Of a stretch of DNA of 64,000 bases, positions 1,234 through 20,703 are shown in pieces; positions within the stretch are counted from its first letter, which is position 1, and the number at the start of each line of letters is the position of its first letter. Origin of the DNA: Pseudomonas aeruginosa PAO1 (GTDB lineage: Bacteria; Pseudomonadota; Gammaproteobacteria; Pseudomonadales; Pseudomonadaceae); NCBI RefSeq assembly GCF_000006765.1, contig NC_002516.2. One strand, written 5' to 3'. The notes under the pieces are model-generated. The model ran no database searches. It saw nothing but the letters and a program-made list of their open reading frames with translations, and was not told where the DNA came from. The position numbers and the translations under genes were made by a program.

Positions 1234-2649
1234 TCAGCGCCAGCCGCGGGTGCGCGCCACCGCTTCGCTGAAACGCACCTGCCAGCGCCGGGCGGTGCCG
1301 GCGTCGACCCGCGGCTGGAACTCCGTGCGAGTGTTGCGCGGCTCCGCCAGTTCGTGGCCGAGGCCACGTGCGGCAAGGGCGGCGCAACCGAAGGCGGTGA
1401 GTTCGTCGAAGCGCTGGGTGACGATGCGCCGTTGCAGGCTGTCGGCGAGGAACTGGGCGAAGTAGGGGCTGCGCGCCAGGCCGCCGTCGATGGACAGGCG
1501 GTCGGTGACCTTCAGGTAGCCGTCCATCGCCTGGATCACCTCGGCGCTGCGCAGCACCACGCCTTCGAGCAGGGCCTGGCAGAGGTCCTCGCGGCGGGTG
1601 CCGGCGTCCATTCCCAGCCACATCGCGCCGGCGCTGCGGTCCCAGTGCGGGCATGCGAGTCCCGACAGGGCCGGGACGAAGGCCAGGCCGCGCTCGATGG
1701 CCGGCGGCCGGTCGAAGCCGGCCAGTTCCGAGAAGTCGCTGAACAGGCCGAGACGCCCGGCCCACTCGACCGCGGCGCTGGCGTCGTAGACCCCGCCGTC
1801 CATGGCGTACACCGGTTTGCCATCGATCTGCCAGGCGATGGTGGCGAGCAGGCCTGTCTCCGGCGAGCGGATGATCCGCTCGCCGCTGAGAGTCAGGGCG
1901 AAGGCGCCGGTGCCGAAGGTGATCTTCGCATCACCGGGCTGGCGGCAGCCGTGACCGTAGAGCGAGGCCTGCTGGTCGACCACCGAGGCCGTCAGCGGGG
2001 TGTTGCCGATCACCCCGAAATGGCCGACGGTATCGCGGATTTCCGGCAGGCACTCGATCGGCACGCCGAACAGGGCGCACAGGTCGGGGTCCCAGCGGCC
2101 CTCGGCGAGGTTCATCAATGCGGTACGCGAGGCGGTGGTGACGTCGGTGGCGAAGGTTCCGCACAAGCGGTCGAGAAACCAGGCATCGCTGGTTCCCAGG
2201 CGCAGGCGGCCTGCCTTCAAAGCCCTGCGAGCGGCCGGAAGGTGCTCGACGATCCAGCCCAGCTTGCTGGCCGAGAAATAGGCGTCGAGCGGCAGGCCGC
2301 TGCGTTCCAGGACCAGCGCCTCGGCGCCGCTGGCGCGTAGACGCTCGATGTGCGGGGTGGTGCGGTTGTCCTGCCAGACGATCAGCGGCGACAACGGCTC
2401 GCCGCTGCGGGCGTCCCAGGCCATGCAGCTTTCGCCCTGGTTGGCGAGGCCGATGGCGTCGACCCGGCCGCTGGCCTCCAGGCAGCGTTGCAGGTTGGCC
2501 AGCAGTTCCAGCGGATCGTGCTCGACCCAGCCGGACTGCGGATGGTGTTGCTGGTGACGCAGCGCCAACTGAATATCGGCGCTGCCGTCCTGGCTGGCGA
2601 CCAGCACGCGGGTACTGGTGGTTCCCTGGTCGAGGGCGGCGATTCGCAT
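1234..2649 (-). CDS. FGGY-family carbohydrate kinase, glycerol-kinase-like
   Basis: Start reset to MRIAALDQGTTSTR at 2649; IVWQDNRT, YFSASKLGW, DQQASL, KITFGTGAF and VPALSGLACPHWD motifs. Confidence 0.9.
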   Translation of the reverse strand: MRIAALDQGTTSTRVLVASQDGSADIQLALRHQQHHPQSGWVEHDPLELLANLQRCLEASGRVDAIGLANQGESCMAWDARSGEPLSPLIVWQDNRTTPHIERLRASGAEALVLERSGLPLDAYFSASKLGWIVEHLPAARRALKAGRLRLGTSDAWFLDRLCGTFATDVTTASRTALMNLAEGRWDPDLCALFGVPIECLPEIRDTVGHFGVIGNTPLTASVVDQQASLYGHGCRQPGDAKITFGTGAFALTLSGERIIRSPETGLLATIAWQIDGKPVYAMDGGVYDASAAVEWAGRLGLFSDFSELAGFDRPPAIERGLAFVPALSGLACPHWDRSAGAMWLGMDAGTRREDLCQALLEGVVLRSAEVIQAMDGYLKVTDRLSIDGGLARSPYFAQFLADSLQRRIVTQRFDELTAFGCAALAARGLGHELAEPRNTRTEFQPRVDAGTARRWQVRFSEAVARTRGWR

Positions 2650-2669
2650 GGTCGGTTCTCTTCGCGGGT

Positions 2670-3908
2670 TCAGTGGCCGGAGGTGAGGAAAGCGACTTCC
2701 AGGCGCCGGGTGTCCGGCGGCAGGCGCAGGGCGGCCAGCGGCACCAGCAGGCGGCGCTCCGGCAGGCAGGACAGGGCACGCTCCCACACCGGGCGACCAT
2801 CGGCCAGGATCCGCAGGCGGCCGCTGGCGGCCTCGCTTACGCGTAGCTGCAGATGCGCCAGGCCGGGTGTCGGGTCGGCCAGCAGCCGCTGCGGCACGCA
2901 CAGCTTGAGCGGACCACTGCAATCGATGGCTATGCCAGGTGCGGCACTCGGCAGTTCGGCCCGCAGGTCGGCGGCCAGCAGGCCGGCGATCCTTCGTCCC
3001 TCGCGGAACGACCAGCCGGCGGTCTCGATCGGCCGGAGCAGGTTGCCGGCGGCGAAATAGGCGGGGTCGGAGCAGCGGCCGAACTGATCGATGCGCGGGC
3101 CGCCGCTGGCCGGGTCCAGTTCCAGGTGGCTGAGGCGGACCAGGCTCGATTCGGGAACGAAGCGTCCGCTGAGGAGGATGCCGTCACAGGCGATCCGTTC
3201 GACGCGCCCGTCGCCCAGGCGTACCCGCGCCGCCTCGACCCGGCCGCGGCCTTCGATCTCCAGCAGCTCGCTGGAGAAGTGCATCGGTACTCCGCACAGC
3301 CTGGGAAACAACGATAGCGGCCAACGCGCAGTGGCCCGTGCGTTGCGTTCGAGCATGGCCACCGGGCGGATGCCGGCACGCCGGCAACTCATCACGGCGG
3401 ACAGGCTGACCAGCTCGGTGCCGACGATCAGCGGCCGTTCGAACGGCTTCAGGCCTTGCAGATAGAGATAGGCTTGCAGCGCGCCGGTATTGATCACGCC
3501 CAGTGGCCGGTCGCCGCCCAGCAGGCGCGCCGAGCGCGGCGTCTCGCGTGCGCCGGTGGCCAGCAGCACGCGTGTCGCGCGCAGACTGCGCGGGCCTTCC
3601 GGGGTGGCCAATTGCAGCAGGCCGGCGGCGGCGAGAGCAACCACGCTATGGCGCAGGCGGATATCCACCCCGGCCCGTTCGGCCTGTTCGACGTTACGCT
3701 GTGCATAGGCCGGGCCGGTCAACAGGCGGCCGTGTTCGCGCAGGCCGAACGGCGGATGCGCGCAATGCCGGGGTATACCGCCGGCCTCGCCGTCGCGCTC
3801 CAGCACGCAGACCCGGGCGACGCCCTGGCGGCGTAGTTCGATGGCGGCTGCCAATCCGGCGGGACCGCTGCCGACGATGGCGACGTCGACCTGTTCAGTG
3901 ATGCTCAT
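2670..3908 (-). CDS. FAD/NAD(P)-dependent oxidoreductase (pyridine nucleotide-disulfide type)
   Basis: VAIVGSGPAGLAAA, GGIPRHCAH, LLATGARE and AAGNLLRP motifs; overlaps the upstream gene by 14 nt. Confidence 0.85.
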   Translation of the reverse strand: MSITEQVDVAIVGSGPAGLAAAIELRRQGVARVCVLERDGEAGGIPRHCAHPPFGLREHGRLLTGPAYAQRNVEQAERAGVDIRLRHSVVALAAAGLLQLATPEGPRSLRATRVLLATGARETPRSARLLGGDRPLGVINTGALQAYLYLQGLKPFERPLIVGTELVSLSAVMSCRRAGIRPVAMLERNARATARWPLSLFPRLCGVPMHFSSELLEIEGRGRVEAARVRLGDGRVERIACDGILLSGRFVPESSLVRLSHLELDPASGGPRIDQFGRCSDPAYFAAGNLLRPIETAGWSFREGRRIAGLLAADLRAELPSAAPGIAIDCSGPLKLCVPQRLLADPTPGLAHLQLRVSEAASGRLRILADGRPVWERALSCLPERRLLVPLAALRLPPDTRRLEVAFLTSGH

Positions 3909-5304
3909 GGCAACTCCCGGTGGCGAGGGGCTGGGCGAGGCGGCCGGCGCTCAGCTCGGCGACCCGCGCGTTGCAGTAGAAACCCTGGCAGCGTCCCATG
4001 CAGGCGCGGGTGCGACGCTTCAGACCGCCGAAGTCGCCGGCTGGCAGCGGCCCTTCCAGGGCGGCGAGGATTTCCCGGCGGGTGACCATCTCGCAGTGGC
4101 AGACGATCTCGTCGTAGCCGGGACGCTGCCAGTCGCGCGGCAGGTGTTCGGCGAGGTTCGGTACCTGTGGCCAGAGCGGCTCGCGAACCGCTTCGTGGAA
4201 GCGCTCGCCCTGGTAGAGACGATAGACGTGGCGTGCGATGCCCAGCGCCGCGGTGAGACCGGTGGAACGGATGCCGCCGACACTGATCCAGTTGCGTCCG
4301 TCGACCTGGCGGATGCGGTATTCCTTCTTTTCGCTGGCCGGTCGCAATCCTGCGTAGGTGGCGGTGACCGGCATGCCGCGCAGGCCGGGGATCCGCTCGA
4401 CGGCGGCGTCGATCAGTCGCTGCAGGGTGTCGCTGTCGACCCGTGCCTGTTCGCGGTCGTCCTGTTCCTCGGCGGTGGGGCCGGCGAGCAGGTTGCCGAA
4501 GACAGTACGGGTGAATACCACCCCCTTGGTCCGCTCGTTGGGTACCGGTAGCAGGATGTGCCGCAGCAGCGCCGCGGCGGCCTTGTCGAAGACCACGAAC
4601 TGGCCCTTGCGCGGATGGATGGCGAAGCTCGCCGCGCCGAGCAGGCGCTGTTCCAGTTGGTCACCGAAGAGTCCGGCGCAGTTGATTACCTGGCTCGCGC
4701 GCAGATCGCCGCGGCGGGTATGCAACAGCCATTCGCCGCCGTCGAAGGCGCCGTCCAGCACTTCGACGTCGAAACAGGCCTCGGCGCCATGGGCCAGCGC
4801 CTGTTGCAGATAGGCGAGCGGCGCGGACCAAGGGTCGACCAGATGTTCCCCGGGGACCCGCACCGCGCCGAGCACGTTGCCGGCCAACTGCGGCTCCAGC
4901 GCCAGGACCTCGTCGCGACCGACCTGGCGGACGTCATCGACACCGTTGCCGTGGGCCTGCTCGACGATAGCCGGCAGGCGCGCCAGATCCTCGTCGCTCC
5001 ATGCCGCCACCAGGGCGCCGGTTTCCAGCAGCGGCAGGTTGAGGCGCGCATGGATGTCGCGGTATTCGCGATAGCCCTCCTGCATGCAGGCCAGTTCGAT
5101 GCTGCCGGGCGGCGCGTCGAAACCGGTATGGAGGATCGCGCTGTTGCCCTTGCTGGCACCGGAGAGGATGTCGGTGCTTTTTTCCAGCAGGACCACCCGC
5201 GCACCTTCCAGGGCGAAGCGGCGGGCCATGGCGCAACCCACCACGCCAGCGCCGATCACTGCAACGTCGAAGATCGCGGTCTTTGTCGCAAGCGGCTCAG
5301 TCAT
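3895..5304 (-). CDS. GlpA/LhgO-like FAD dehydrogenase with a C-terminal BFD-like [2Fe-2S] domain
   Basis: VIGAGVVG, GASKGNSAILHTG, PRKGQF, GIRSTGLTAA; C-terminal CHCE...RACMGRCQGFYC. Confidence 0.85.
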   Translation of the reverse strand: MTEPLATKTAIFDVAVIGAGVVGCAMARRFALEGARVVLLEKSTDILSGASKGNSAILHTGFDAPPGSIELACMQEGYREYRDIHARLNLPLLETGALVAAWSDEDLARLPAIVEQAHGNGVDDVRQVGRDEVLALEPQLAGNVLGAVRVPGEHLVDPWSAPLAYLQQALAHGAEACFDVEVLDGAFDGGEWLLHTRRGDLRASQVINCAGLFGDQLEQRLLGAASFAIHPRKGQFVVFDKAAAALLRHILLPVPNERTKGVVFTRTVFGNLLAGPTAEEQDDREQARVDSDTLQRLIDAAVERIPGLRGMPVTATYAGLRPASEKKEYRIRQVDGRNWISVGGIRSTGLTAALGIARHVYRLYQGERFHEAVREPLWPQVPNLAEHLPRDWQRPGYDEIVCHCEMVTRREILAALEGPLPAGDFGGLKRRTRACMGRCQGFYCNARVAELSAGRLAQPLATGSCHEHH

Positions 5305-5358
5305 CGTTTCTGCCTGTTTCTTTTGGTATCAGTTTTCTTTTTGACCGTAACACTGATT

Positions 5359-5382
5359 TTTCACACAGAATTCTATGTGAAA
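5359..5382. promoter_or_regulatory. Near-perfect 24-bp palindrome, candidate operator
   Basis: TTTCACACAGAATTCTATGTGAAA in the AT-rich region upstream of the oxidoreductase operon. Confidence 0.45.
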
Positions 5383-5488
5383 TTTGTTGTTTTAATGTGG
5401 CAACTGAAAGAGAAACAGTCAATCGATTAATCGACGGGCAGCCACCGGCACAGCCCCGGCCTGTCTCCGGGGCTGCGCGCGAGGGGAG

Positions 5489-6265
5489 TCAGGCCTGCGG
5501 GGTGCGCAGGGGGGCTTCGTGGACTTCCACCCGCGCCTGTTGCAGGGCCTCCCAGAGTTCCCCGGTAGGCTTGCGGTCGACCACCAGGCGGTTGATCCGG
5601 CTCAGCGGGAAGACCTGGAACAGGGCGCGCCGGCCGAGCTTCGAGGAGTCGGCGATAACCGTCAGTTGGCGGGCCTGGGCGATCATGGCACGGGCGATCT
5701 CGGCTTCCTCGATGGAAAAATCCATGGCGCCATCGCCGTTCAGCGCGCCGACGGTGATCACCGCATGCTCGGCGTTGAACCGGGCGATCTGCTCGATGGC
5801 CAGGGCGCCGACGTTCTGTTCGGATTCCGGGCGGTACTCGCCGCCGATCATGAATGCACGGTTGCCGGAGGCGCCGACGCTGCCGGCGATCAACAGCGAG
5901 TTGGTGATCACCGTCAGATGGCTCTGGCGCGCCAGTTCGCGGGCGAACAGCAGGGTGGTGGTGCCGGTGTCGATGAAGATGCTGTCACCGGGCCCGAACA
6001 GGCCGGCGGCGTAGCGGGCGACTGCGCGTTTTTCCTGGGCGTGCTCGTTCATTCGCGTCTGGAAGGCGTTCTCGTGCTCGCCGCTGGGCGGCAGGGCGGC
6101 CCCTCCGTGGAATTTGCTGACCAGGCCTTGTTCGGCCAGCGCGGCGAGGTCGCGGCGAATGGTTTCCTGAGAGGTGGAAAGGGTCCGCGCCAGTTCGTCC
6201 ACCGAGATCCGCTCGCGCTGGCGCAGCAATTCGAGAATGTGGCGGCGGCGTTCCTCGGGGCGCAT
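5489..6265 (-). CDS. DeoR/GlpR-family transcriptional regulator
   Basis: RRRHILELL...SQETIRRDL..L, KFHGGA, EK..VA, IFIDTGTT, VITNSL and ADSSK motifs. Confidence 0.93.
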   Translation of the reverse strand: MRPEERRRHILELLRQRERISVDELARTLSTSQETIRRDLAALAEQGLVSKFHGGAALPPSGEHENAFQTRMNEHAQEKRAVARYAAGLFGPGDSIFIDTGTTTLLFARELARQSHLTVITNSLLIAGSVGASGNRAFMIGGEYRPESEQNVGALAIEQIARFNAEHAVITVGALNGDGAMDFSIEEAEIARAMIAQARQLTVIADSSKLGRRALFQVFPLSRINRLVVDRKPTGELWEALQQARVEVHEAPLRTPQA

Positions 6266-6493
6266 CGTGTTCTCCCATGGGCCGCATCCTGGTGCGGCGA
6301 TTGTTACCGTGAATCGCCCGGTAGCGCCTGGCGGCGCTGGGCGGAAGGGGGCGGGGCGAGGCTTTGCGCAGGCCCGGCGGAAAATCCCACAGGTCCGTAA
6401 GGCAGGTACGCTCTTGGATTGGCCGCCTACTTGACCGTATGGGTGACCAATTTAGGTAAAACGAACCTTCAAATCAACACGAAAACCAAATTG

Positions 6494-6508
6494 TGGCACG
6501 CGAAATGC
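6494..6508 (+). promoter_or_regulatory. Sigma54 (-24/-12) promoter candidate for the EutH-like permease
   Basis: TGGCACGCGAAATGC against consensus TGGCACG-N4-TTGC, with correct GG/GC spacing. Confidence 0.6.
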
Positions 6509-6611
6509 GAGTGTTCGCTTCGGCGGAGCGACCGGCGTGGCCGGCCTCCCGACCAGACAACCAGAAGAACGCATCCCGCTACGGGAGCCTGCCGAGGGGA
6601 GAACGACGCAG

Positions 6612-7847
6612 ATGGCCGAGTTCGGAAACTATGTGATTTACCTGATCATGCTGGGTGCGGTACTTGGCGCGCTGGCTTCCATCCTGCGCCCGGAAAGCGG
6701 TCTGGGCCGCGAGTTCGTCAACGGCATCCACGCCATCGGTCCGGTGTTCCTCGCCCAGGCCGGCATCATGGTAGCCATTCCCTATCTGTCGAAGGCGATT
6801 TCCCATGCCCTCGGCCCGTTCTTCCAGACCCTCGGTTCCGACGTATCCATCGCCGCGCTGTCGATCATCGCGGTGGACATGGGCGGCTACCAGTTGGCCG
6901 ATGCCCTGACCGCCAACCGCGACATGTGGATTACTGCCATGCTGGTGGGCTACACCTCCGGCGCGACCATCGTCTACCTGATCCCGGTCGGCCTGACCAT
7001 GCTCGAGCGCAAGGACCACAAGTACCTGGCGCTGGGGGCGATGGCCGGGTTGATCAGCATTCCGTTCGCGGTGCTGGCGGCGTTGCTGCTGATTACCCTC
7101 AACCACATCCCGGTGCGCGAACTGGTATCGACCGGTTCGCCGGCCCTGCACTACCTGTCGCTGGACTTCCTCGACATGCTTCGGCTGCTGGCGCCGCTGT
7201 TCGTCTTCTGCTTCCTGCTGGCCGCCGGCCTGAAGTACCGGGCGACGGCGATGGTCACCGGGTTCCTGGTATTCGGCAAGGTGATGGACGCGTTCATCAA
7301 GATGGCCCTGGCGCTTTCCATCGTCCAGCACTTCACCGGAGTCTTCACCAAGGTCTTCGGCGGCTGGGGCTTCGACCCGATGTTCGCCGACGAGAAAGAG
7401 TTGTTCCGCGCCATCGAGATCGCTGGCTACATCGGCATCATGCTGGCCGGGACCTTCCCCATCTGCTACCTGTTCCAGCGCTACTGCAAGCGCCCGATGG
7501 CGGTCCTCGGCCGTTACCTGGGGCTGTCCCAGCCGGGCGCCACCGCCTTTGTCATGGTACTGGCGAACATCATCGCCACCTACCACCTGTTCAAATACAT
7601 GAATGCTCGCGACAAGGTGCTTTGCGTGGCCCTGGGCGTCTGCGCCCAGGCCACCATCGGCGATCACCTGGCATTCACCGCCAACTTCCAGCCGACGCTG
7701 ATCCTACCGATCCTGCTCGGCAAATTGTTCGGCGGCCTGCTGGCGGTATTCATCGCCATCCGCATCTCGGTGCCTGCCGCCGAGCGCTATGCGCGGCAGG
7801 AGCAGGAGCATGACGAGGCGGAAAAAAGCGCCCTGCACGCAGCCTGA
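6612..7847 (+). CDS. EutH-family (ethanolamine-type) permease
   Basis: Start MAEFGNYVIYLIMLG after GAGGGG RBS; many TM helices; DMGGYQLA and IGDHLAFTANFQP motifs. Confidence 0.85.
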   Translation: MAEFGNYVIYLIMLGAVLGALASILRPESGLGREFVNGIHAIGPVFLAQAGIMVAIPYLSKAISHALGPFFQTLGSDVSIAALSIIAVDMGGYQLADALTANRDMWITAMLVGYTSGATIVYLIPVGLTMLERKDHKYLALGAMAGLISIPFAVLAALLLITLNHIPVRELVSTGSPALHYLSLDFLDMLRLLAPLFVFCFLLAAGLKYRATAMVTGFLVFGKVMDAFIKMALALSIVQHFTGVFTKVFGGWGFDPMFADEKELFRAIEIAGYIGIMLAGTFPICYLFQRYCKRPMAVLGRYLGLSQPGATAFVMVLANIIATYHLFKYMNARDKVLCVALGVCAQATIGDHLAFTANFQPTLILPILLGKLFGGLLAVFIAIRISVPAAERYARQEQEHDEAEKSALHAA

Positions 7848-7906
7848 AACATCCCCCGACGAGCGCCGCGAGCCATCGCGGCGTCGCTTTCCGCAACGAG
7901 GTAACC

Positions 7907-8263
7907 ATGCGCAAGATATTCCTAGCCTGTCCCTACAGCCATGCCGACGCCGAGGTGGTCGAGCAGCGCTTCCGTGCCTGCAACGAGGTCGCGGCGACCA
8001 TCGTCCGCGCCGGCCACGTGGTATTCAGCCAGGTCTCCATGTCCCACCCGATCAACCTGTGCCTGGCCGAGCTCGACCGCGCGGCGATCGGCAGGTTGTG
8101 GGCGCCGGTGGACGCCTTCTACATGGATCACCTGGAAGAGCTGATCGTCCTCGACCTGCCGGGCTGGCGAGACAGCGCCGGCATCCGCCGCGAGATGGAG
8201 TTCTTCGAGGCCGGCGGACAGCGGGTCAGCCTCTGGTCCGAGGTGGAGCACGAGTTTCGCTGA
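7907..8263 (+). CDS. Small DUF1937-like protein (nucleoside 2-deoxyribosyltransferase-like fold)
   Basis: IFLACPYSH, VFSQVSMSHP, GW..S.GI..E..F motifs; GAGGT RBS. Confidence 0.7.
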   Translation: MRKIFLACPYSHADAEVVEQRFRACNEVAATIVRAGHVVFSQVSMSHPINLCLAELDRAAIGRLWAPVDAFYMDHLEELIVLDLPGWRDSAGIRREMEFFEAGGQRVSLWSEVEHEFR

Positions 8264-8344: not shown

Positions 8345-9343
8345 TCAGTTGGGGCTGTAGATCTGGTCGAATACGCCGCCGTCGATGAAGTGGGTCTTCT
8401 GCACGCTGCGCCAGTCGCCGAAGGTCTTCTCCACCGAGAAGAAGTCGACTTTCGGGAAGCGGTCGGCGAACTTGGCGAGGATCTCCGGGTTGCGCGGGCG
8501 CAGGTAGTTGTTGGCGGCGATGGTCTGGCCCTCGTCCGACCACAGGTACTTCAGGTAGGCCTCGGCCTGGGCGCGGCTGCCTTTCTTCTCGACCACCTTG
8601 TCGACCACCGCCACGGGGGGCTCGGCCTCGGCGGACACGCTCGGGTAGACCACCTCGAAGCCGCCTCGGCCGAATTCGCGGGCGATCATCTCGGCTTCGT
8701 TCTCGAAGGTCACCAGTACGTCGCCGATCTGGTTCTGCATGAAGGTAGTGGTGGCGGCGCGGCCGCCGGTGTCGAGCACCGGTACCTGCTTGAACAGCTT
8801 GCCGACGAATTCCTTGGCCTTGTTCTCGTCACCGCCGTTCTTCAGCACGTAGCCCCAGGCGGAGAGATAGGTATAGCGGCCGTTGCCGGAGGTCTTGGGG
8901 TTCGGCACCACTACCTGGACGCCGTCCTTGAGCAGGTCCGGCCAGTCCTTCAGGGCCTTGGGGTTGCCCTTGCGAACGATGAACACGGTGGCCGAGGTGA
9001 ACGGCGCGCTGTTGTTCGGCAGGCGGGTCGCCCAGTCCTTCGGCACCAGGCCGCCGTTGTCGGCGAGGGCGTCGATGTCGGTGGCCTGGTTCATGGTGAT
9101 GACGTCGGCGGGCAGACCGTCGATCACCGAGCGCGCCTGCTTGCTGGAACCGCCATGGGACATCTGGATGGTGATGTTCTCGCCTTTCTCCGCTTTCCAG
9201 TATTTCTGGAAGGCCGGGTTGTATTCCTTGTAGAAGTCGCGCATCACGTCGTAGGAGACGTTGAGCAGGGGCTGGGCGGCGTGAGCGGCGCCGCCGAGCG
9301 CCAGGCCGGCGGCCAGCAGGGAGGCGCTGAACAGTCGTTTCAC
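8345..9343 (-). CDS. cysP: Sulfate/thiosulfate ABC transporter periplasmic binding protein
   Basis: Signal peptide; LLNVSYD, SHGGSSKQARSV and PNPKTSGNGR motifs. Confidence 0.92.
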   Translation of the reverse strand: MKRLFSASLLAAGLALGGAAHAAQPLLNVSYDVMRDFYKEYNPAFQKYWKAEKGENITIQMSHGGSSKQARSVIDGLPADVITMNQATDIDALADNGGLVPKDWATRLPNNSAPFTSATVFIVRKGNPKALKDWPDLLKDGVQVVVPNPKTSGNGRYTYLSAWGYVLKNGGDENKAKEFVGKLFKQVPVLDTGGRAATTTFMQNQIGDVLVTFENEAEMIAREFGRGGFEVVYPSVSAEAEPPVAVVDKVVEKKGSRAQAEAYLKYLWSDEGQTIAANNYLRPRNPEILAKFADRFPKVDFFSVEKTFGDWRSVQKTHFIDGGVFDQIYSPN

Positions 9344-9471
9344 AGGGCAGTTCCTTTGAGCATGTTGTAGTGGCTCGACTATAACGTCGGGTTATATGCA
9401 GGGTAAATATCAAAAACTGCTTTGCTTATTACCCGCTCGAGCCTATGCCGCGGCCGGCGCTTTGGCCAGCG

Positions 9472-11127
9472 CTAGTCGAGGCCGCTGACCGCCAGGTCCT
9501 TGGGATACTCCACGCTGAACTTCAGGGTGGCGCTGCGTTTCTCGCCGGGTTGCAGGGTCCAGTCCCACTTCAGCTTGCCGTCGTCCTCGCGCTTGACTTC
9601 CTGCGCCTTGGGTTCCAGCAAGGTGACCTGGATCTGCTCGTTGCGCGAGACCGGCAACTGGTCCTCGAACTGCACGCGTTCGGCGTTCTTGTGGTTGTTG
9701 CGCACGTCGATGCGGAATTCGTAGTTGACCCGCGTGCGGTTGCCGATCAGGCCGCTGCTGTCGGTGTAGCGCTTGACCAGCTTGCGTTCGATGCCGATGC
9801 CCTCGTCGGCGCCCAGTGCCAGTTCGAAGCTTTCCCCGGGCATCACCCCGCGCAGATGGCCGCTGGCGACGAAGCTGTTGCCGAGAAAGGTATTCAGGGT
9901 GCCGGGGAGCAGCGGGTAGTCGCTGTCGTTGCGGGTTTCCGCCTCCAGGTAGGCGGTTTCGCGCAGGGCCGGGGCCGCCAGGTAGCGCAGCTTGGCCGGC
10001 ATTTCCAGGCGGGCGATGGTGACCTTCTGCGCGCTGCCGTCGCTGTTCAGGGTCGCCGGCACGGGGATGTGGAAAGAGGCGCTGGCGGCGCCGCTGCTGA
10101 CCTCCGCGGTGGCGAGCCGCGCCTCGGCCAGCTTCGGCGCCGGGGCCGGCATGGCCATCTTCGCCGAGGTCCTGGCGATGGGAGCGGCTTGCGGCATGGG
10201 CGCCGGAACGTCCTGCATGGCCATCTCGGCACCGTAGTAGGCGTTGGGCGCGTCGATGTCGACGATCCAGGGATTCAGCCGCGGTACGTTGCCGCCCAGG
10301 GCCGGACGGGCGGTGGAGAGGGTCAGGTCGACGTCGGTCCAGTCTTCGCCGCTGCTCTGCCGGACCAGGCCCTGGTAGGTCAGTTCGATGGTCTTCGCGC
10401 CGTCGCGCAGGCGTGCGTCGTAGGTCGGCTGCCAGGAGGCGTCGCGCAGGGTGTAGTCGAGCTTCACCTCGACCTGTGCCGGTTGCTCCAGGGCGACCCG
10501 CAGGACCGCGCGCTTGAAGCGCTTGCCGTCGCCGTTGAGGGTGCCGCGCTGCTCCTGCAACTGCTGCTTGCGCTGTTCCAGTTCGGCGGCGCGGTCGTCC
10601 AGCTGGCGCTGCTCGGCGAGCAGGCGTTCGAGGTTGCCTTCGGTCAGTTGCAGCAGGCTTTTCAGCTCGTCGATGCCGGGCATGGGGCGATCCTTGCCGG
10701 GCTGGGTGCTGCCGCTCTGGATGTCGGCGAGGAACTTCTTCTGCGCTTCGAGCACGCTGCCGCGGTCATGGATTTCCCGCAGTTGCCGGTCTATCTCGCG
10801 CAGTTGCTGGTCGAGTTGCTGCACACGGTTGTCGTCCGGGCGCTCGACCCGTTGCGCGGCGCTGCTGACGTCGAGCAGGGTAGCGGCGGCGCTGGCACCG
10901 AGGGACGCGCGCAGGCTGGCGTCGTCGAGCTGGAAGGGCAGTTGCTCCAGGGCGATCTCATGCTGGCCCTTGGGCAATTGCAGGCGGGCGGTGCGGGTGA
11001 CCACGGCACGGTCGGCGTAGACGGTGACCGCGCTGATGCGGCTGTCGACCGCTTGTGGCGCGGCCAGCAACGGAGCGCTGGCGAACAGGCCGGCGAACAG
11101 GAGCGGAGAGGCGGCGAGTCGATTCAC
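9472..11127 (-). CDS. muiA: Mucoidy inhibitor MuiA-like secreted protein (DUF4140/DUF4139)
   Basis: Signal peptide; ISAVTVYADRAVVTR, coiled coil, ASWQPTYD, Q.SGEDW.DVDLTLSTARP. Confidence 0.85.
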   Translation of the reverse strand: MNRLAASPLLFAGLFASAPLLAAPQAVDSRISAVTVYADRAVVTRTARLQLPKGQHEIALEQLPFQLDDASLRASLGASAAATLLDVSSAAQRVERPDDNRVQQLDQQLREIDRQLREIHDRGSVLEAQKKFLADIQSGSTQPGKDRPMPGIDELKSLLQLTEGNLERLLAEQRQLDDRAAELEQRKQQLQEQRGTLNGDGKRFKRAVLRVALEQPAQVEVKLDYTLRDASWQPTYDARLRDGAKTIELTYQGLVRQSSGEDWTDVDLTLSTARPALGGNVPRLNPWIVDIDAPNAYYGAEMAMQDVPAPMPQAAPIARTSAKMAMPAPAPKLAEARLATAEVSSGAASASFHIPVPATLNSDGSAQKVTIARLEMPAKLRYLAAPALRETAYLEAETRNDSDYPLLPGTLNTFLGNSFVASGHLRGVMPGESFELALGADEGIGIERKLVKRYTDSSGLIGNRTRVNYEFRIDVRNNHKNAERVQFEDQLPVSRNEQIQVTLLEPKAQEVKREDDGKLKWDWTLQPGEKRSATLKFSVEYPKDLAVSGLD

Positions 11128-11191
11128 GATATCTCTTCCTTGGGCGGATGGAGGGGCGAGGAACCCGTGCGTGCGGTCCCTTCCTGCTGCC

Positions 11192-11221
11192 TGAGACGCA
11201 AGCGCGGTGAAAGACGGGTTA
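11192..11221 (-). promoter_or_regulatory. ECF-sigma-type promoter upstream of muiA
   Basis: Minus strand TAACCCG-N16-CGTCTCA (AAC/CGT ECF pattern); agrees with my recollection that SbrI controls muiA. Confidence 0.55.
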
Positions 11222-11250
11222 AGCGGCGCGAAGAAATTTTCCCGTGCGGC

Positions 11251-11877
11251 TCAGGCCGGCTGTTCCAGGCGCTCCAGGGCACCGCGCAGGTTGGCGCGGG
11301 CGGCGGCCTCCCAGCGCTGCCGCAGCGGTTCGCAGTGGTACAGCGCCGGTTGCTCCAGCAACTGGCGCAGCAACTTGCCGCGCCCGGCGCGGAACAGCGG
11401 TTCCGGCACCCAGGCGTATTCGGCGCGGACGTCCGCCTCGTAGCGTGCGTAGACCGGCGCCGGCGCGGCGAGGATGGCGAGGTCGAGATCCACCACCAGG
11501 GCTGCGTCGGCGTCTCCCGGCGGCGCCTGGTGACAGGTGGCCATGATCAGTTCGCGCAGGGCCGGCCGCAGCGCCGCCAGCCCGGCCTGGTCGAGCCAGC
11601 GCTCGGTGCTGGCGGCGCTGGCGGCCTCGTTGTCCTGGCGCTGGGTGTCGTAGACCAGGTCGTGGGTCCACAACGCCAGCTCCACCAGGTCCGGCCGCCG
11701 CGCCAGTTGGCGCCAGCGGTCGAAGTGCTCCAGGCAGGCGAGGATGTGGCGATCGCTGTGGTAGTGCCGGTCGGCCCCGCCATAGGCCGCCAGCAGCGCG
11801 TCGAAGGCATCCGCCGGCGGGTTGCCGCCGAGTCGCTGCCAGAGGGCGTCCCAGCGCTGCCGGTCAAGACTTCCCAT
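11251..11877 (-). CDS. HD-superfamily metal-dependent phosphohydrolase
   Basis: RHYHS.RH, LALWTHDLVYD, NEAASA and DLDLAIL motifs. Confidence 0.8.
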   Translation of the reverse strand: MGSLDRQRWDALWQRLGGNPPADAFDALLAAYGGADRHYHSDRHILACLEHFDRWRQLARRPDLVELALWTHDLVYDTQRQDNEAASAASTERWLDQAGLAALRPALRELIMATCHQAPPGDADAALVVDLDLAILAAPAPVYARYEADVRAEYAWVPEPLFRAGRGKLLRQLLEQPALYHCEPLRQRWEAAARANLRGALERLEQPA

Positions 11878-12715
11878 GGCTGCCTTCCTCGCGAGGGAAC
11901 AACGGGTTGCCGCAGCGGCAGCAGAATGCCGCCTGCACTTCGTGGGTCGCCTTGCGGCACACCGGGCAATCCCGCTGCAACAGGTTGGCCGGGTCCTGGC
12001 GCATCGCGGTGGCGAGTTCGGCGGTGAAGATCCCGGTGGGCACCGCGATGATCGAGTAGCCGGTGAGCATCACCAGGCTGGCGATGGCCTGGCCGAGCGG
12101 GGTCTTCGGGGTGATGTCGCCGAAGCCGACCGTGGTCAGGGTGACGATCGCCCAGTAGATGCCGCGGGGGATGCTGGTGAAACCGTGCTCCGGGCCTTCG
12201 ACCACGTACATCAGCGCGCCGAACACGGTGACCAGGGTCATCACGGTGAGGAAGAACACGATGATCTTCTGCTTGCTGCCGCGCAGGGCGGTGAGCAGGA
12301 AATTGGCCTGGCTCAGGTACTGGCGTAGCTTGAGCACGCGGAAGATCCGCAGCATGCGTATCACCCGGACGATCAGCAGGTACTGGGCGTCGGGGTAGAG
12401 CAGGGCGAGGAAGCCGGGGAGGATCGCCAGCAGGTCGACCAGGCCGTAGAAGCTGAAGGCATAGCGCAGCGGCTTGGGCGAGCAGTACAGGCGCAGCAGG
12501 TATTCCACCAGGAAGATGCCGGTGAAGCCCCATTCGATGTAGGCCAGCAGGTCGCCGTAGTCCTGGTGGATTTCGTCGATGCTGTCGATCATCACTACCA
12601 GCAGGCTGGCCAGGATCACCAGCAGCAGCGCGCTGTCGAAGCGCCGGCCGTCGCGGGTGTCGGTCTGGAAGATGACGATGTAGAGGCGTTCGCGCCAGCT
12701 GTCGGGTGCGCTCAT
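11864..12715 (-). CDS. 6-TM voltage-gated-type potassium channel with a C-terminal Cys knuckle
   Basis: Start MSAPDSW; S4 RVIRMLRIFRVLKL; pore TLTTVGFGDITP; CPVC...CCRCG. Confidence 0.9.
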   Translation of the reverse strand: MSAPDSWRERLYIVIFQTDTRDGRRFDSALLLVILASLLVVMIDSIDEIHQDYGDLLAYIEWGFTGIFLVEYLLRLYCSPKPLRYAFSFYGLVDLLAILPGFLALLYPDAQYLLIVRVIRMLRIFRVLKLRQYLSQANFLLTALRGSKQKIIVFFLTVMTLVTVFGALMYVVEGPEHGFTSIPRGIYWAIVTLTTVGFGDITPKTPLGQAIASLVMLTGYSIIAVPTGIFTAELATAMRQDPANLLQRDCPVCRKATHEVQAAFCCRCGNPLFPREEGSHGKS

Positions 12716-12780
12716 CGTGGCTCCTGATGATGGATGCGGCACCTTACCAGACTAGCCCGCCGGCGCCAGCGTTCCCCCGC

Positions 12781-13695
12781 TCAGGAGCGTCGCCGGCCGA
12801 GGCGCGCGCCGAGGCTGCCGGCCAGGCGCAGGTACAGGCGCTCGCCGCCGATGCAAAGCAGGCAGGCGAGGATGAACGGTGCGGTCAGCGCCGGCAGGCC
12901 GAGCAGGCCGAACAGCGGTTGCAGCGCCACCGCCAGGACCATGCCGAGCAGTGGCGGCCAGACGCTGCGGTAGCGCAAGGCCAGGGCCAGCCCGGCAAGG
13001 GCGGCGTTCAGGCCGTAGAACCCGGCGAGCGCGCTCGCCCAGTCGTAGCCCAGCAGCCAGGCCAGCGGCAGGCTGGCCGCGGCGCCGGCGAGGGCCCAGG
13101 CGGCGGAGGGACGCGAGACCAGCAGCAGGCCGAGCCAGACCAGCAGCCCTGCCAGCGGTTCACCAAGGAAGATGATCTCGCCGATCCCCAGCGTTAGCGC
13201 CGCCAGCTCCGCCGTGCCGCTCCAGGCGCAGCTGAAGCAGCCGCCATGGGCCGCCGGGGCCAGGCCTAGCCAGGCGCCGAGGGGCACCAGCCACCAGCCG
13301 TTGAGGACGAAGCCCAGGGTATAGGGCGGAAGCCAGCGGCGTCGGCGCAGCCCATGCAGGAACAGGCGCTGCAACGCCACGCTGGCCAGGCAGCCGAGCG
13401 CTACCAGCGACACCAGCCCCGGCGACCAGGCGAAGCGGAATGCCAGCAGCATGCCGATCAGCACGGCGTTGTAGCCGTACAGCCCGGCCTCGATGTCGCT
13501 GTCGGCGCAGTGCAACAGGCGCGCCAGCAACGGGCCGAGGGCGCCGCCAAGGAGGGCGCCGGCGAGCAGCGGCGGCGCGCCGACGGCGATCGCCAGCAGA
13601 CAGGCCAGGCCCAGGCGTGGGTCGCCCTGGAGGAACACCTGGCTGATGCCGCGCAGGAGGATTCGGGATGCATTGAGGAGAGATTGCAGGGGCAT
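12781..13695 (-). CDS. Urea transporter (UT family)
   Basis: GISQVFLQ, GLYGYNAVL, GIGEIIF, G.YGLNAALA and LTAPFIL repeats. Confidence 0.85.
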   Translation of the reverse strand: MPLQSLLNASRILLRGISQVFLQGDPRLGLACLLAIAVGAPPLLAGALLGGALGPLLARLLHCADSDIEAGLYGYNAVLIGMLLAFRFAWSPGLVSLVALGCLASVALQRLFLHGLRRRRWLPPYTLGFVLNGWWLVPLGAWLGLAPAAHGGCFSCAWSGTAELAALTLGIGEIIFLGEPLAGLLVWLGLLLVSRPSAAWALAGAAASLPLAWLLGYDWASALAGFYGLNAALAGLALALRYRSVWPPLLGMVLAVALQPLFGLLGLPALTAPFILACLLCIGGERLYLRLAGSLGARLGRRRS

Positions 13696-13843
13696 GGCGG
13701 TCAGTGCGGCAAGGGCCGCTCGGCAGGCACGGAGATGCCAGGCCTGCGCGAGGGGCGGGGGCGGTCATTGTAGGGTCTGGCGCGGAGGCGACGCACCCCG
13801 GACGAGAAGGCCAGGCGAGGGTCATGCATGCAGGGCGTTCCAA

Positions 13844-13883
13844 GAAGAAAAAAAGACCTCCGGCAGGAGTTGAACCGGAGGCC
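13844..13883 (-). terminator. Intrinsic terminator of the gcl-pykF operon
   Basis: Minus strand GGCCTCCGG-loop-CCGGAGGTC followed by a T-tract. Confidence 0.8.
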
Positions 13884-14061
13884 TTGAATGTCCATGGCCT
13901 GCATGGGAGTGCGCGAGGGAGGCCATGGTCCGACAAGAAGGTCTTTCCCGGATGGATGGAGACGCGGCCCCGTATTTCCGGCCCCATCCATCCGAGAGAG
14001 ACAAGGGTGGCCCGACCCGCATGCCCGGGGGGACGGCGCGAGCCGGACCGAACTCGTTGCT

Positions 14062-15495
14062 TCAGAGATCTCCCAGCGGCGGCGCCACGGTCTCGATGCG
14101 CAGCATGTTGGTCGAGCCGGGGCGACCGAACGGTACGCCGGCGGTGACCACCACGGTGTCGCCGCGGCGCGCCATGCGCTGGGCCAGGGCGATGTCGAGG
14201 GCGGTCGAGCAGATCTCGTCGACGTGCGCCAGTTGCTCGTTGACCACCGAATACACGCCCCAGGCCACGGTCAGTCGCCGCGCGGTACGCAGGTTCGGGG
14301 TCAGGCTGAGGATCGGCGCCTTGGGCCGCTCGCGGGCGGCGCGCAGGGTCGAGTTGCCCGACTCGGTGTAGTTCACCAGCACCGCCACCGGGAGGATCCG
14401 GCTGACCCGGCGGATCGCGCAGCTGATCGCATCGGAGACGGTAGCGTCGGGCTGCGGACGGTTGACCTCGAGCTGGACGTGGTAGTCCGGCTCGGCCTCC
14501 ACCTGGCGGACGATCTTCGCCATCATCTCTACCGCCTCGCGAGGGTATTGTCCGGAAGCGGTTTCCGCCGAGAGCATCACCGCGTCGGCGCCGGCGCCCA
14601 CCGCGGTGGCTACGTCGGTCACCTCGGCGCGGGTCGGGGCGGGGGAGAAGCGCATCGACTCGAGCATCTGGGTGGCCACCACCACCGGCTTGCCGAGCTG
14701 GCGGCAGACCTGGACGATGCGTTTCTGGATGCCTGGCACGCTCTCCGCCGGCACCTCTACGCCGAGGTCGCCGCGCGCCACCATGATCGCGTCGGCGCGC
14801 TCGGCGATCGCCTCGATGGCGCTCACCGCGCTGGGCTTCTCGATCTTGGCCATGAGGAAGGCCTTGTCGCCGATCAGCCCACGGGCCTCGTCGATGTCCT
14901 CCGGGCGTTGCACGAAGGACAGCGCCACCCAGTCGACCCCCAGTTCCAGGCCGAAGGCCAGATCGCGGCGGTCCTTGTCGGTCAGCGGGCTGAGTTGCAG
15001 CACCGCTTCCGGCACGTTGACGCCCTTGCGATCGGACAGCTCGCCACCCACCGCCACGCGGGTCTCGATGGCGTCGCTGTGGCAGTTGACCACTTCCAGG
15101 CGGATCTTGCCGTCGTCCAGCAGCAGGCTCATGCCCGGTTCCAGGGCATGGATGATCTCCGGATGCGGCAGGTTGACCCGCCGCTCGTCGCCGGGGGCGT
15201 CGCTGAGGTCGAGGGTGAAGGTCTGCCCACGCTGCAATTGCACGGCACCGGCGGCGAAGCGGCCGACCCGCAGCTTCGGACCCTGCAGGTCCATGAGCAC
15301 GCCGATCGGGTAGTTCAGCTCCGCTTCCACCTCGCGCACCCAGGCGAAGCGCTGCGCGTGATCGGCATAGTCGCCGTGGCTGAAGTTCAGGCGGAGCAGG
15401 TTGGCGCCGGCCTCCACCAGGGCACGGATATCGTCGCGGCTGCGGGTGGCCGGGCCGAGGGTGGCGAGGATCTTGGCTTTCTTGTCGGCTGTCAT
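14062..15495 (-). CDS. pykF: Pyruvate kinase
   Basis: KILATLGPA, RLNFSHG, DLQGPKLRVG, MVARGDLGVE and ATQMLESM motifs. Confidence 0.95.
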   Translation of the reverse strand: MTADKKAKILATLGPATRSRDDIRALVEAGANLLRLNFSHGDYADHAQRFAWVREVEAELNYPIGVLMDLQGPKLRVGRFAAGAVQLQRGQTFTLDLSDAPGDERRVNLPHPEIIHALEPGMSLLLDDGKIRLEVVNCHSDAIETRVAVGGELSDRKGVNVPEAVLQLSPLTDKDRRDLAFGLELGVDWVALSFVQRPEDIDEARGLIGDKAFLMAKIEKPSAVSAIEAIAERADAIMVARGDLGVEVPAESVPGIQKRIVQVCRQLGKPVVVATQMLESMRFSPAPTRAEVTDVATAVGAGADAVMLSAETASGQYPREAVEMMAKIVRQVEAEPDYHVQLEVNRPQPDATVSDAISCAIRRVSRILPVAVLVNYTESGNSTLRAARERPKAPILSLTPNLRTARRLTVAWGVYSVVNEQLAHVDEICSTALDIALAQRMARRGDTVVVTAGVPFGRPGSTNMLRIETVAPPLGDL

Positions 15496-15496
15496 G

Positions 15497-16762: not shown

Positions 16763-17058
16763 GACAGGCTCCGAATTTCTTGTTGTCGTGCCGCCGGTCG
16801 GACCAGCGGTCGCAGCGTCGTCGACGCTTCCATTCCGCAGCACCCGCGCCGGCGGGAACTGGGGAATGGAAGCGAGGCGCCCGGACGCAGAGGCCGTGAA
16901 TCTCCCGGCCGGGCGTTCGCTTCCTTTACCCCGCCTTGTGGGCGGGGAAGGAAGAGGGCGGCGGCGAACACCGGAGTTCGCCGACCGTTCCTCTCCCCGA
17001 GCCCTTCGAAAAGGGGTTCGTCGCTCCGCGCGGGGTGACGGCCCGCGCGGACTGCGGA

Positions 17059-17949: not shown

Positions 17950-18023
17950 GAGAGTGTCTCCTGGTTCTGTCTGTCGAGTGGCTCTGCGCAGGGAGGCGGG
18001 AGCGTCTTGTTCGTGGGTGCGGA

Positions 18024-18806
<783 letters not shown>

Positions 18807-18901
18807 GTCTTGCTCCTATCGTTCGGTCAAACGTTCGGGAGGCCTTTCGCCGGGGGCGGGGTGCCGCACGCACCGTCCGCGCCTCCGGGAATGGCCGGCG
18901 A

Positions 18902-20677
<1,776 letters not shown>

Positions 20678-20703
20678 CGTTTTGTTCCTCGTTCTTATAC
20701 TAA

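Follow-up and report, generated by a model that had tools for sequence, protein, structure and literature searches.

A kinase-flavoprotein gene cluster with a EutH permease, PA1487-PA1492 of Pseudomonas aeruginosa, as a candidate catabolic module for a glycerol-like amino alcohol

The 64,000-nucleotide (nt) stretch of Pseudomonas aeruginosa PAO1 analysed here (contig NC_002516.2; hereafter the window) carries near its start a six-gene cluster that we consider a candidate catabolic module for a small amino alcohol resembling glycerol. Judged by its sequence, the 1-12 kb part of the window is the PA1486-PA1494 region, and the six cluster genes are PA1487-PA1492. Three enzyme genes lie on the minus strand: an FGGY-family kinase (PA1487-like; 1234-2649; 471 amino acids (aa); Pfam FGGY_N and FGGY_C), a two-dinucleotide-binding flavoprotein (PA1488-like; 2670-3908; 412 aa; Pfam Pyr_redox_2), and a DAO-fold flavoprotein with a C-terminal BFD-like [2Fe-2S] domain (PA1489-like; 3895-5304; 469 aa; Pfam DAO and Fer2_BFD). 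Since the end of the DAO/BFD gene overlaps the Pyr_redox_2 gene by 14 nt and a gap of 20 nt separates the latter from the kinase gene, the three genes form one operon, and the overlap suggests that the first two may be translationally coupled. An AT-rich control region of 184 bp (5305-5488) lies between this operon and the gene for a DeoR-family regulator (PA1490-like; 5489-6265, minus strand; Pfam HTH_DeoR and DeoRC). On the other side of a divergent deoR/eutH control region (6266-6611), the plus strand encodes a EutH-family permease (PA1491-like; 6612-7847; 411 aa; Pfam EutH, NCBIfam NF011668) and a DUF1937 protein (PA1492; 7907-8263; Pfam DUF1937). Open reading frame (ORF) mapping together with Pfam and NCBIfam searches recovered, at the same positions, all six genes that the original prediction, a reading of the DNA letters alone, had listed. 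Two alternative starts were rejected: a 562-aa kinase ORF reaching 2922 is an over-extension, as homologues and the Pfam match start at the ATG at 2649, and a GTG at 6537 was discarded as the EutH start in favour of the ATG at 6612. The genes are still generically named despite the much-studied genome in which they lie, and a literature search by locus tag for PA1487-PA1492 returned only passing mentions and nothing functional. PA1487 is given as one of three uncharacterised putative glycerol kinases (PMC8151288), PA1490 is a passing entry in a transcription-factor atlas, and PA1492 is represented by a structure of unknown function.

The kinase has the two-domain FGGY fold (FGGY_N 160 bits, FGGY_C 94 bits) with its catalytic Asp and ATP-binding motifs, and its best PDB match is the glycerol kinase 2DPN (313 bits). 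Its scores against two GlpK models are under the cut-offs, at 405.6 bits for TIGR01311 (equivalog cut-off 590.35) and 364.5 bits for NF000756 (cut-off 498). The specificity residues of GlpK, namely Arg83, Glu84, Tyr135, Asp245, and Phe270, have been described as "extremely well conserved and identical" across GlpK clusters (PMC3245297), and Arg83 makes charge-dipole and dipole contacts to the glycerol hydroxyls (PMC2680290). Mapped through conserved motifs aligned to PDB 2DPN and 6UDE, and not to E. coli GlpK directly, the corresponding signature of the window kinase is Gly72-Glu73-Tyr124-Asp225-Phe250, in which the Glu, Tyr, Asp, and Phe of GlpK are retained and Arg83 is replaced by Gly; the full five-residue glycerol signature is thus absent. 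At the level of motifs, NQGES of the kinase aligns to NQRET of solved glycerol kinases, and the Trp, Tyr, Asp, and Phe motifs are kept. Gly takes the place of Arg83 in all 65 kinases of one alignment, window kinase included, in which the DQGTTS and GTGAF motifs are likewise invariant, and six distant kinases, among them those of Providencia, Serratia, Kordiimonadaceae, Arcobacter, and Salmonella, also have Gly, as (N/H)QGE(S/T). Loss of a positive side chain beside a retained Glu would be expected if the ligand brings an ammonium or a larger group to this place, and we propose that the protein is a GlpK-like amino-alcohol kinase, possibly acting on serinol (2-amino-1,3-propanediol).

The families nearest to the DAO/BFD protein (DAO 199.5 bits, Fer2_BFD 30.8 bits) are type-2 glycerol-3-phosphate (G3P) oxidase, LhgO, and GlpA, with scores under the cut-offs for both type-2 GlpO (NF033460; 196.3 bits, cut-off 460) and GlpA (TIGR03377; 121.1 bits, cut-off 552.8). 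Its nearest PDB entry is the GlpO of Mycoplasma pneumoniae (4X9M), whose His51, Lys258, and Arg320 align with His59, Lys260, and Arg321 of the window protein; Lys258 and Arg320 are reportedly phosphate ligands. His51 is catalytic in the M. pneumoniae enzyme (PMC10726252). The three aligned residues are invariant among 82 family members, as are the BFD cysteines Cys402, Cys404, Cys439, and Cys444, so that, with a BFD domain at the score given above, the "Fe-S" label of the original prediction is borne out. Because the GlpO-like catalytic His and the presumed phosphate ligands are kept, the substrate of the dehydrogenase would be phosphorylated and about the size of G3P, and a triose phosphate is the likely product. 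We therefore propose the DAO/BFD protein as the catalytic subunit acting on a phosphorylated substrate.

The 412-aa Pyr_redox_2 partner is less easily placed in a family. It matches sarcosine oxidase alpha subunits and thioredoxin reductases weakly (62.7 bits against soxA TIGR01372, cut-off 1164; 33 bits against PDB 2GAG_A), and an R47-H48-C49-x-H51 motif is invariant in an alignment of its homologues. An AlphaFold2 model (pLDDT 69.5) compared with the PDB by Foldseek gave no specific relative, returning the generic two-dinucleotide-binding flavoprotein fold of TrxR, FNR, DLD, and SoxA alpha at a TM-score of about 0.3. In an Arcobacter contig the DAO and Pyr_redox_2 parts are fused into a single 764-aa protein (L089, 4010-6304), which shows that the two window genes encode one enzyme as well, and the partner is proposed to be the electron-transfer subunit of the dehydrogenase. 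At the window cluster, the ORF map and Pfam search found this NOX-like Pyr_redox_2 partner and no GlpB-, GlpC-, or MOX-like gene.

The three enzyme genes travel together well beyond Pseudomonas. Fourteen homologues of the 412-aa partner were aligned and one genome per species was scanned, which gave 323 matching stretches and hence at least 323 species genomes with the module. In a first neighbourhood survey of the best 80 of these 323 loci, in which the window proteins were compared by tblastn with 10-kb flanks, the DAO/BFD gene lies directly upstream of the partner gene in 79, and the kinase gene directly downstream of the partner in 67. Conservation of the order DAO, Pyr_redox, kinase in 67 of 80 loci from many genera indicates that the linkage is not due to chance. 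The module ranges over alpha-, beta-, and gammaproteobacteria, Campylobacterota, and one acidobacterium; the taxa of the first survey are Pseudomonas, Halotalea, Salinisphaera, Salinicola, Acetobacteraceae, Rhizobiales, Rhodobacteraceae, Geminicoccaceae, Burkholderiales, Oceanospirillales, Thiotrichales, and one metagenome-assembled genome (MAG) of Bryobacteraceae. Counts of further neighbours within 5 kb come from ORF maps and are approximate, the tblastn table being more reliable, as the maps of GC-rich loci contain shadow ORFs and drop true genes (e.g., an APC gene in L027 and L030). In a second survey, searched from EutH, 14 loci were annotated with Pfam. One of its contigs, from Salmonella enterica (L091), carries kinase-EutH-DUF1937 and DAO-Pyr_redox units amid a phage-type integrase, CcdAB and MazE/PIN toxin-antitoxin pairs, and a DDE transposase, with fragments of a split FBPase gene adjoining this copy of the module. 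Such island-like surroundings suggest horizontal spread.

In four unrelated contigs (L090, L092-L094), the place directly upstream of the DAO/BFD-Pyr_redox pair is occupied by a protein of the APH/choline-ethanolamine-kinase family (272-281 aa); in L090, L092, and L094, three of the four, there is an overlap between the gene for this protein and the DAO gene. These contigs have no FGGY kinase; a DeoR or RpiR regulator and either EutH or an ABC importer are present, with EutH following the Pyr_redox gene in two (L090 and L092). APH-type kinases were sought in the 80 loci of the first survey (L001-L080), and none was found there. As either of two unrelated kinases stands beside the same dehydrogenase, the dehydrogenase works with both types. 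The best-known members of the APH/choline-ethanolamine-kinase family phosphorylate amino alcohols.

The carriers beside the enzyme genes also tend to be of amine type. The window EutH scores 384.6 bits against Pfam PF04346 (cut-off 25) and 705 bits against NCBIfam NF011668 (cut-off 575), and the other EutH models of NCBIfam give it about 200-250 bits, which sets them apart from the NF011668 subgroup to which it belongs; it is 100% identical to P. aeruginosa EutH entries. The first survey found EutH in 21 of 27 Pseudomonas loci and in none of the 53 others. An apparent restriction of EutH and DUF1937 to Pseudomonas proved to be a sampling effect of choosing the best 80 loci and was refuted by searching from EutH itself: members of the same subgroup, 58-79% identical, adjoin module enzymes in at least eight lineages (Pseudomonas, Ectopseudomonas, Providencia, Serratia, the Salmonella island, Kordiimonadaceae, Arcobacter, and Candidatus Adiutrix), as well as in another metagenomic contig. 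Failure of the permease to co-occur with the enzymes in other genomes had been named at the outset as a finding that would speak against a common pathway, and the neighbourhood comparison gave the opposite result. Arrangements differ. Providencia has a kinase-EutH operon with DAO-Pyr_redox-DeoR-DUF1937 divergent from it; Serratia has kinase-EutH-DUF1937 with overlapping kinase and EutH genes; Kordiimonadaceae have a single operon, DAO-Pyr_redox-kinase-EutH; and Ectopseudomonas mendocina has the window's six genes, but its deoR converges on the enzyme operon. The EutH gene comes straight after the kinase gene, or overlaps it, in Providencia, Serratia, Kordiimonadaceae, Arcobacter, and the Salmonella island. 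The EutB and EutC families were found neither in the 14 Pfam-annotated loci, which carry this EutH subgroup or the APH variant, nor in 1-12 kb of the window, the part scanned. This EutH subgroup appears dedicated to the module, and we propose that EutH is an uptake facilitator for the amino alcohol. One 549-aa EutH-DUF1937 fusion call was seen in a cluster of 48 P. aeruginosa sequences (P0122); compared with window 6612-8263, the frames are shifted around the linker, which suggests small indels in homopolymer runs between the genes, and the fusion could be natural or an artefact of sequencing or annotation.

Where EutH is missing, other carriers take its position. An Eat-type ethanolamine permease directly follows the kinase in Paraburkholderia elongata (TIGR00908, 564 bits, above the cut-off of 382), and APC permeases related to TIGR00907/TIGR03428 follow it in the P. 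gingeri group. In five loci (Salinisphaera, Geminicoccaceae, and an alphaproteobacterial MAG) an APC permease lies between the Pyr_redox and kinase genes, and the six Pseudomonas loci without EutH have an APC permease in its stead. A YdcS/Pot-like ABC system is the neighbouring carrier at some loci without EutH, and an Opp/Dpp-like ABC system occurs with a DMFA2_C amidohydrolase in Rhizobiales and with an amidase in Burkholderiales. The Rhizobiales gene, directly upstream of DAO in five loci (L033, L035, L047, L061, and L062), encodes a protein of 753-780 aa resembling the N,N-dimethylformamidase large subunit; a small ORF intervenes in three of the five, and as a whole this set resembles an uncharacterised feeder that would supply the module with amines from amides. 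Neither the 80 ORF-mapped nor the 14 Pfam-annotated loci contained a recognisable MIP/GlpF-like gene.

The DUF1937 protein (PF09152, 164.4 bits) is 100% identical over 118 residues to PDB 1T1J. That entry is PA1492 itself, with a fold assigned to the N-deoxyribosyltransferase-like clan (PMC7308715). The structure has been available for years with no function attached, and a literature search on DUF1937 and 1T1J returned nothing functional. In the first survey the gene was present in all 27 Pseudomonas loci and none of the 53 others, being the first gene divergent from deoR in the six Pseudomonas loci that carry an APC permease for EutH. Beyond that survey, Providencia, Serratia, E. mendocina, and the Salmonella island have the gene alongside the module; it is missing from the Kordiimonadaceae, Arcobacter, and APH-kinase loci, and from all alpha-, beta-, epsilon-, and deltaproteobacterial versions. 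This distribution marks DUF1937 as a gammaproteobacterial accessory gene of the module.

The DeoR protein (HTH_DeoR 63.9 bits, DeoRC 159.9 bits) reaches no equivalog model, its best NCBIfam match being haloarchaeal GlpR (GlpR_Halo; 182 bits, cut-off 300). A DeoR gene lies within 5 kb of the enzyme trio in approximately 57 of the 80 loci and in most Pfam-annotated loci, and an RpiR/SIS regulator takes its place at one APH-variant contig (L090). Regulators of both families typically sense phosphorylated metabolites, and the window DeoR is, by analogy, a probable repressor released by a phosphorylated intermediate. A 9-mer, TTGACCGTA, occurs before the enzyme operon (5341-5349) and before eutH (6431-6439). 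These are its only two copies in the 64 kb, with 0.13 expected, and no shuffle contained two matches; kindred TGACCGA(A/T)T words are found upstream of the DAO gene in other Pseudomonas loci. The region before the enzyme operon further holds a 24-bp palindrome (5359-5382) and, behind deoR, a hairpin (5448-5478) that falls between deoR and the operon. Both TTGACCGTA copies and the palindrome are candidate DeoR operators. Upstream of eutH there is a sigma-54-like -24/-12 motif (6494-6508), and a scan with the sigma-54 promoter consensus showed that 14 of the 27 Pseudomonas loci have such a motif 54-67 nt before the DAO gene, where the background rate is 0.006 per region. A scan of both control regions with the sigma-70 consensus gave no match. 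Such sigma-54-like motifs would suit control by nitrogen or carbon status.

Evidence on the product comes from three Pseudomonas genomes (L005, L014, and L015), in which genes for phosphoglycerate mutase (iPGM), aldehyde dehydrogenase (ALDH), triose-phosphate isomerase (TPI), enolase, and pyruvate kinase are divergent from the DAO gene. These five activities make up a complete route from dihydroxyacetone phosphate (DHAP) to pyruvate, a private branch of lower glycolysis, and an ALDH of the same type adjoins the operon in E. mendocina; the FBPase gene fragments beside the Salmonella island copy count as evidence of the same kind. The gene set suggests a triose-phosphate product. Sugarcane and rhizobitoxine producers contain free serinol, whose biosynthesis starts from DHAP and passes through serinol phosphate (PMC3222319); passages in PMC12096443 and PMC12409886 describe it as amide-linked to glucuronic acid in a Campylobacter capsule. 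The latter form would fit the amidohydrolase/Opp variants of the module. With its glycerol-like three-carbon skeleton, its amine, ethanolamine-type carriers, free and amide-bound occurrence, and DHAP as product, serinol fits the combined observations.

Our preferred reading, to which we assign a probability of a little under 60%, is therefore that the cluster is a catabolic module for a small glycerol-like amino alcohol, with serinol as the best candidate. EutH would admit the amino alcohol to the cell; in other lineages an Eat or APC permease or an ABC importer would do so, sometimes after an amidohydrolase has freed the amino alcohol from an amide. The GlpK-derived kinase, with Gly for the glycerol-binding Arg beside the kept Glu, would phosphorylate a primary hydroxyl. 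The DAO/BFD flavoprotein would then oxidise the phospho-intermediate at C2, converting serinol phosphate into the imine of DHAP and thence into DHAP and ammonium, an outcome that would be the reverse of the biosynthetic transamination. The [2Fe-2S] cluster would hand the electrons to the Pyr_redox_2 partner, from which NAD(P)+, a quinone, or oxygen may receive them, while the triose phosphate would feed lower glycolysis. DeoR would repress both promoters until the phosphorylated intermediate builds up. Gene content, family assignments, residue patterns, synteny, and the alternative neighbours are observed; what the cluster consumes, which way its flux runs, how the amine is removed, where the electrons end up, what DeoR senses, and what DUF1937 does are inferences. 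The original prediction had reasoned from EutH alone that the substrate is a nitrogen-containing glycerol analogue that is phosphorylated and then oxidised; this idea gains support from the Arg83-to-Gly replacement and the APH-type kinase variant, and likewise from the Eat permease, the amine-type carriers, the amidohydrolases, and the fact that no GlpF was seen. A more specific version, which we hold only tentatively and would not yet call probable, is that PA1487-PA1491 and their relatives in several hundred proteobacterial species constitute an undescribed serinol pathway with an Arg83-loss or APH-type kinase, a deaminating FAD/[2Fe-2S] serinol-phosphate dehydrogenase, and uptake of the free or amide form. 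Literature searches on serinol kinase or catabolism, and on EutH with glycerol kinase and DeoR, found no such pathway in the library searched.

Several points weigh against this reading. The Arg-to-Gly change widens the pocket, so a bulkier or N-substituted ligand might fit as well, and APH-fold kinases phosphorylate non-amines too. The dehydrogenase, with its His base kept, appears nearer to the alcohol-oxidising GlpO/L2HGDH enzymes than to amine oxidases such as glycine oxidase, and for this reason carbon-nitrogen oxidation is assumed and not indicated. Family names of carriers do not fix their substrates, and at about a third of loci, an approximate figure from the noisy ORF maps, there is no recognised carrier within 5 kb. 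Only three genomes, related to one another, have the glycolytic set beside the operon. The scheme finds no place for DUF1937, its fold suggesting no obvious step, and serinol is not known to be abundant across the many habitats of the module.

A second, redundant glycerol pathway, in which a glycerol kinase would act with a heteromeric G3P dehydrogenase of Thermococcus/GlpA type and EutH would be a general small-alcohol channel, is an unlikely alternative. All of the best family and structure matches of the kinase are glycerol kinases, the dehydrogenase best matches G3P oxidase and GlpA with the catalytic His and presumed phosphate ligands conserved, and DeoR is most similar to GlpR, but every one of these equivalog scores is under its cut-off (405.6 < 590; 196 < 460; 182 < 300). 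Although PA1487 is given as a possible glycerol kinase (PMC8151288), Arg83, constant in GlpKs, is Gly in all members. A DHAP product would agree with the neighbouring glycolytic genes; however, GlpF is near no locus whereas amine-type carriers recur, and replacement of the kinase by a choline-kinase-type enzyme is hard to reconcile with glycerol. Pseudomonas, moreover, already owns a glycerol system, glpFK-glpR-glpD. Glycerol is the substrate least compatible with the data, and the 1-amino isomer, an N-substituted relative, or ethanolamine could each be accommodated.

To another C3 or C4 amino-polyol we give about the same low weight as to glycerol. The example considered is 3-amino-1,2-propanediol, which after phosphorylation would be oxidised at the aminomethyl carbon to glyceraldehyde-3-phosphate and ammonium; an N-substituted relative is a further case. 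All amine-related evidence for serinol applies equally to these compounds, and the pocket does not separate them, since Arg83 contacts the distal glycerol hydroxyls (PMC2680290), so that a C1 amine would explain its loss equally well, and Gly makes room for a larger group. A GapN-like ALDH, the most frequent metabolic neighbour, also suits entry as glyceraldehyde-3-phosphate, but the TPI of the glycolytic set is better explained by entry at DHAP, and the kept His base and G3P-like geometry suggest chemistry at C2. Serinol is a known natural product, whereas we know of no natural occurrence of 3-amino-1,2-propanediol. A link to pyridoxal 5'-phosphate (PLP) synthesis, by conversion of the 1-amino isomer into 3-amino-2-oxopropyl phosphate, was considered and dropped, as the surroundings lack pdx genes and consist mostly of regulators and transporters of catabolic type.

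Less probable again is a B12-independent ethanolamine route, in which ethanolamine would be phosphorylated, the phosphoethanolamine oxidatively deaminated to phosphoglycolaldehyde, and an ALDH would lead on to phosphoglycolate, glycolate, and glyoxylate. The unrelated carriers EutH and Eat and a kinase of the choline/ethanolamine type are all associated with the dehydrogenase, and amidases beside some loci could free ethanolamine from N-acyl-ethanolamines; yet the kinase keeps and even enlarges the whole three-carbon glycerol pocket, which is ill-suited to a smaller C2 ligand. A glyoxylate-to-pyruvate gene set (gcl-, hyi-, glxR-, and pyruvate-kinase-like) does lie 6-12 kb off in the window, but it is not conserved beside the module in other genomes, and the TPI of the adjacent glycolytic set has no role in the route. 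Phosphoglycolaldehyde is, to our knowledge, not an established intermediate of bacterial central metabolism. Finally, it is highly improbable that EutH and DUF1937 have nothing to do with the enzyme operon and adjoin it in P. aeruginosa by accident. In favour of this view, the two units are divergently transcribed, both genes were missing from all 53 loci outside Pseudomonas in the first survey, and DUF1937 is without obvious metabolic role, but the idea is already contradicted by the distribution, EutH adjoining module enzymes in many lineages, including L090 and L092, by the confinement of TTGACCGTA to the window's two control regions, and by the APC permease that Pseudomonas without EutH gained in the operon.

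Among the genes around the cluster, a peptidase S58 (DmpA-type aminopeptidase/amidase) gene at 126-1226 on the plus strand points toward the kinase gene, whose stop is only 7 nt away; its synteny is limited to the nearest relatives (L001-L003), and it is thus probably unrelated to the module. On the far side, 8345-11127 on the minus strand encodes a sulfate-binding protein (Sbp/CysP-type; TIGR00971, 441 bits) and a MuiA-family mucoidy-inhibitor protein (TIGR02231, 689 bits). Further minus-strand genes at 11864-20713 encode a voltage-gated-type ion channel, a urea transporter, and a pyruvate kinase (14062-15495), followed by 3-hydroxyisobutyrate-dehydrogenase-like, xylose-isomerase-like TIM-barrel, and thiamine pyrophosphate (TPP)-enzyme domain genes that fit a glyoxylate carboligase pathway. 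This set is the PykF/allantoin-associated cluster discussed in PMC8637920. Long antisense "shadow" ORFs, such as one of 860 aa at 9445-12027 (+) opposite the MuiA gene, are not genes and are typical of DNA of about 70% GC.

If the serinol reading is true, it would give roles to five or six genes shared by several hundred species of Proteobacteria that live in soil, in the sea, or in association with plants and hosts, and would describe a first catabolic route for serinol-type amino alcohols, which occur in plants, rhizobitoxine producers, and bacterial capsules. The route would be the catabolic mirror of the biosynthesis that leads from DHAP through serinol phosphate to serinol. Gly at GlpK position 83 would then serve as a specificity signature that tells these kinases apart from genuine glycerol kinases, allowing many annotations as "glycerol kinase" or "EutH ethanolamine utilisation" to be revised, and the GlpA/GlpO branch of DAO-fold flavoenzymes would gain a new substrate class. 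The APH variant would be a clear case of non-orthologous kinase displacement in one pathway.

Compared with described systems, the module fails the family-score cut-offs for membership of GlpK, GlpA/GlpO, and SoxA. It shares with the glycerol pathway (GlpK and GlpD or GlpABC, with GlpF and GlpR) a first step by an FGGY kinase and a second by a DAO-fold FAD dehydrogenase whose substrate is a phosphorylated C3 compound, a regulator of DeoR/GlpR type, a likely DHAP product, four of the five glycerol residues of GlpK, and the catalytic His and presumed phosphate ligands of GlpO. It differs in having Gly for Arg83, scores below the equivalog cut-offs, a Pyr_redox_2 partner rather than GlpB/GlpC, and a EutH, Eat, APC, or amine-type ABC carrier for GlpF, and in a kinase that can be replaced by an APH/choline-kinase-type enzyme. 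According to the passage of PMC11962113 that cites Koga et al. 2019, the G3P dehydrogenase complex of Thermococcus kodakarensis is GlpTk-NOX-MOX. The likeness to a Thermococcales layout noted in the original prediction stands as a resemblance of gene order, with a GlpA-like DAO subunit, an NADH-oxidase-like Pyr_redox protein, and a glycerol-kinase-like gene; it does not extend to the third subunit, as no MOX gene is present here, the lineage is bacterial, and the kinase signature and carriers point away from glycerol.

Among heteromeric amine enzymes, Pyrococcus PDH1 (1Y56), heterotetrameric sarcosine oxidase (2GAG and 1VRQ), opine oxidase, and HCN synthase likewise combine a DAO-fold catalytic subunit with one of Pyr_redox_2 type. 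The module has this two-subunit architecture, its two genes overlapping in the window, adjacent in 79 of 80 loci, and fused in Arcobacter. Such enzymes oxidise carbon-nitrogen bonds, the chemistry proposed here. The 412-aa partner matches SoxA alpha, and the DAO subunit 1Y56_B, weakly and far under the family cut-offs; the catalytic subunit is closer to GlpO/L2HGDH than to any amine oxidase and carries the BFD domain itself, as in GlpA. The EutH of the Salmonella and E. coli eut operon belongs to the same Pfam family (PF04346) and is a presumed facilitator for a small amino alcohol, whereas the window EutH falls in the separate subgroup NF011668 and travels with a kinase and a dehydrogenase, not with EutB/EutC.

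The erythritol pathway of Brucella and Rhizobia (EryA-EryB-EryD), in which an FGGY kinase of polyol-kinase stock makes a phosphate ester that a GlpD-like FAD dehydrogenase oxidises, under the control of a DeoR-type repressor, is a precedent for re-tooling the glycerol scheme to another polyol. EryA is among the kinases listed in PMC3245297. The clade and the substrate of the kinase differ from those here, and the pathway needs isomerases that are absent here and has no amine-type carriers. A different parallel is offered by amino-alcohol degradation: in Mycobacterium RMM, through an aminopropanol kinase, and in Pseudomonas, through the classical amino-alcohol kinases, O-phosphorylation comes first and a PLP-dependent phospho-lyase then yields an aldehyde. 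These routes resemble the module in the initial O-phosphorylation and in the APH-fold kinase of L090 and L092-L094, and differ in the second step, for which the module has an FAD/Fe-S dehydrogenase and no such lyase gene. On present evidence, the best description of the module is a putative amino-alcohol variant of the pathways in which a kinase and a flavoprotein degrade polyols.

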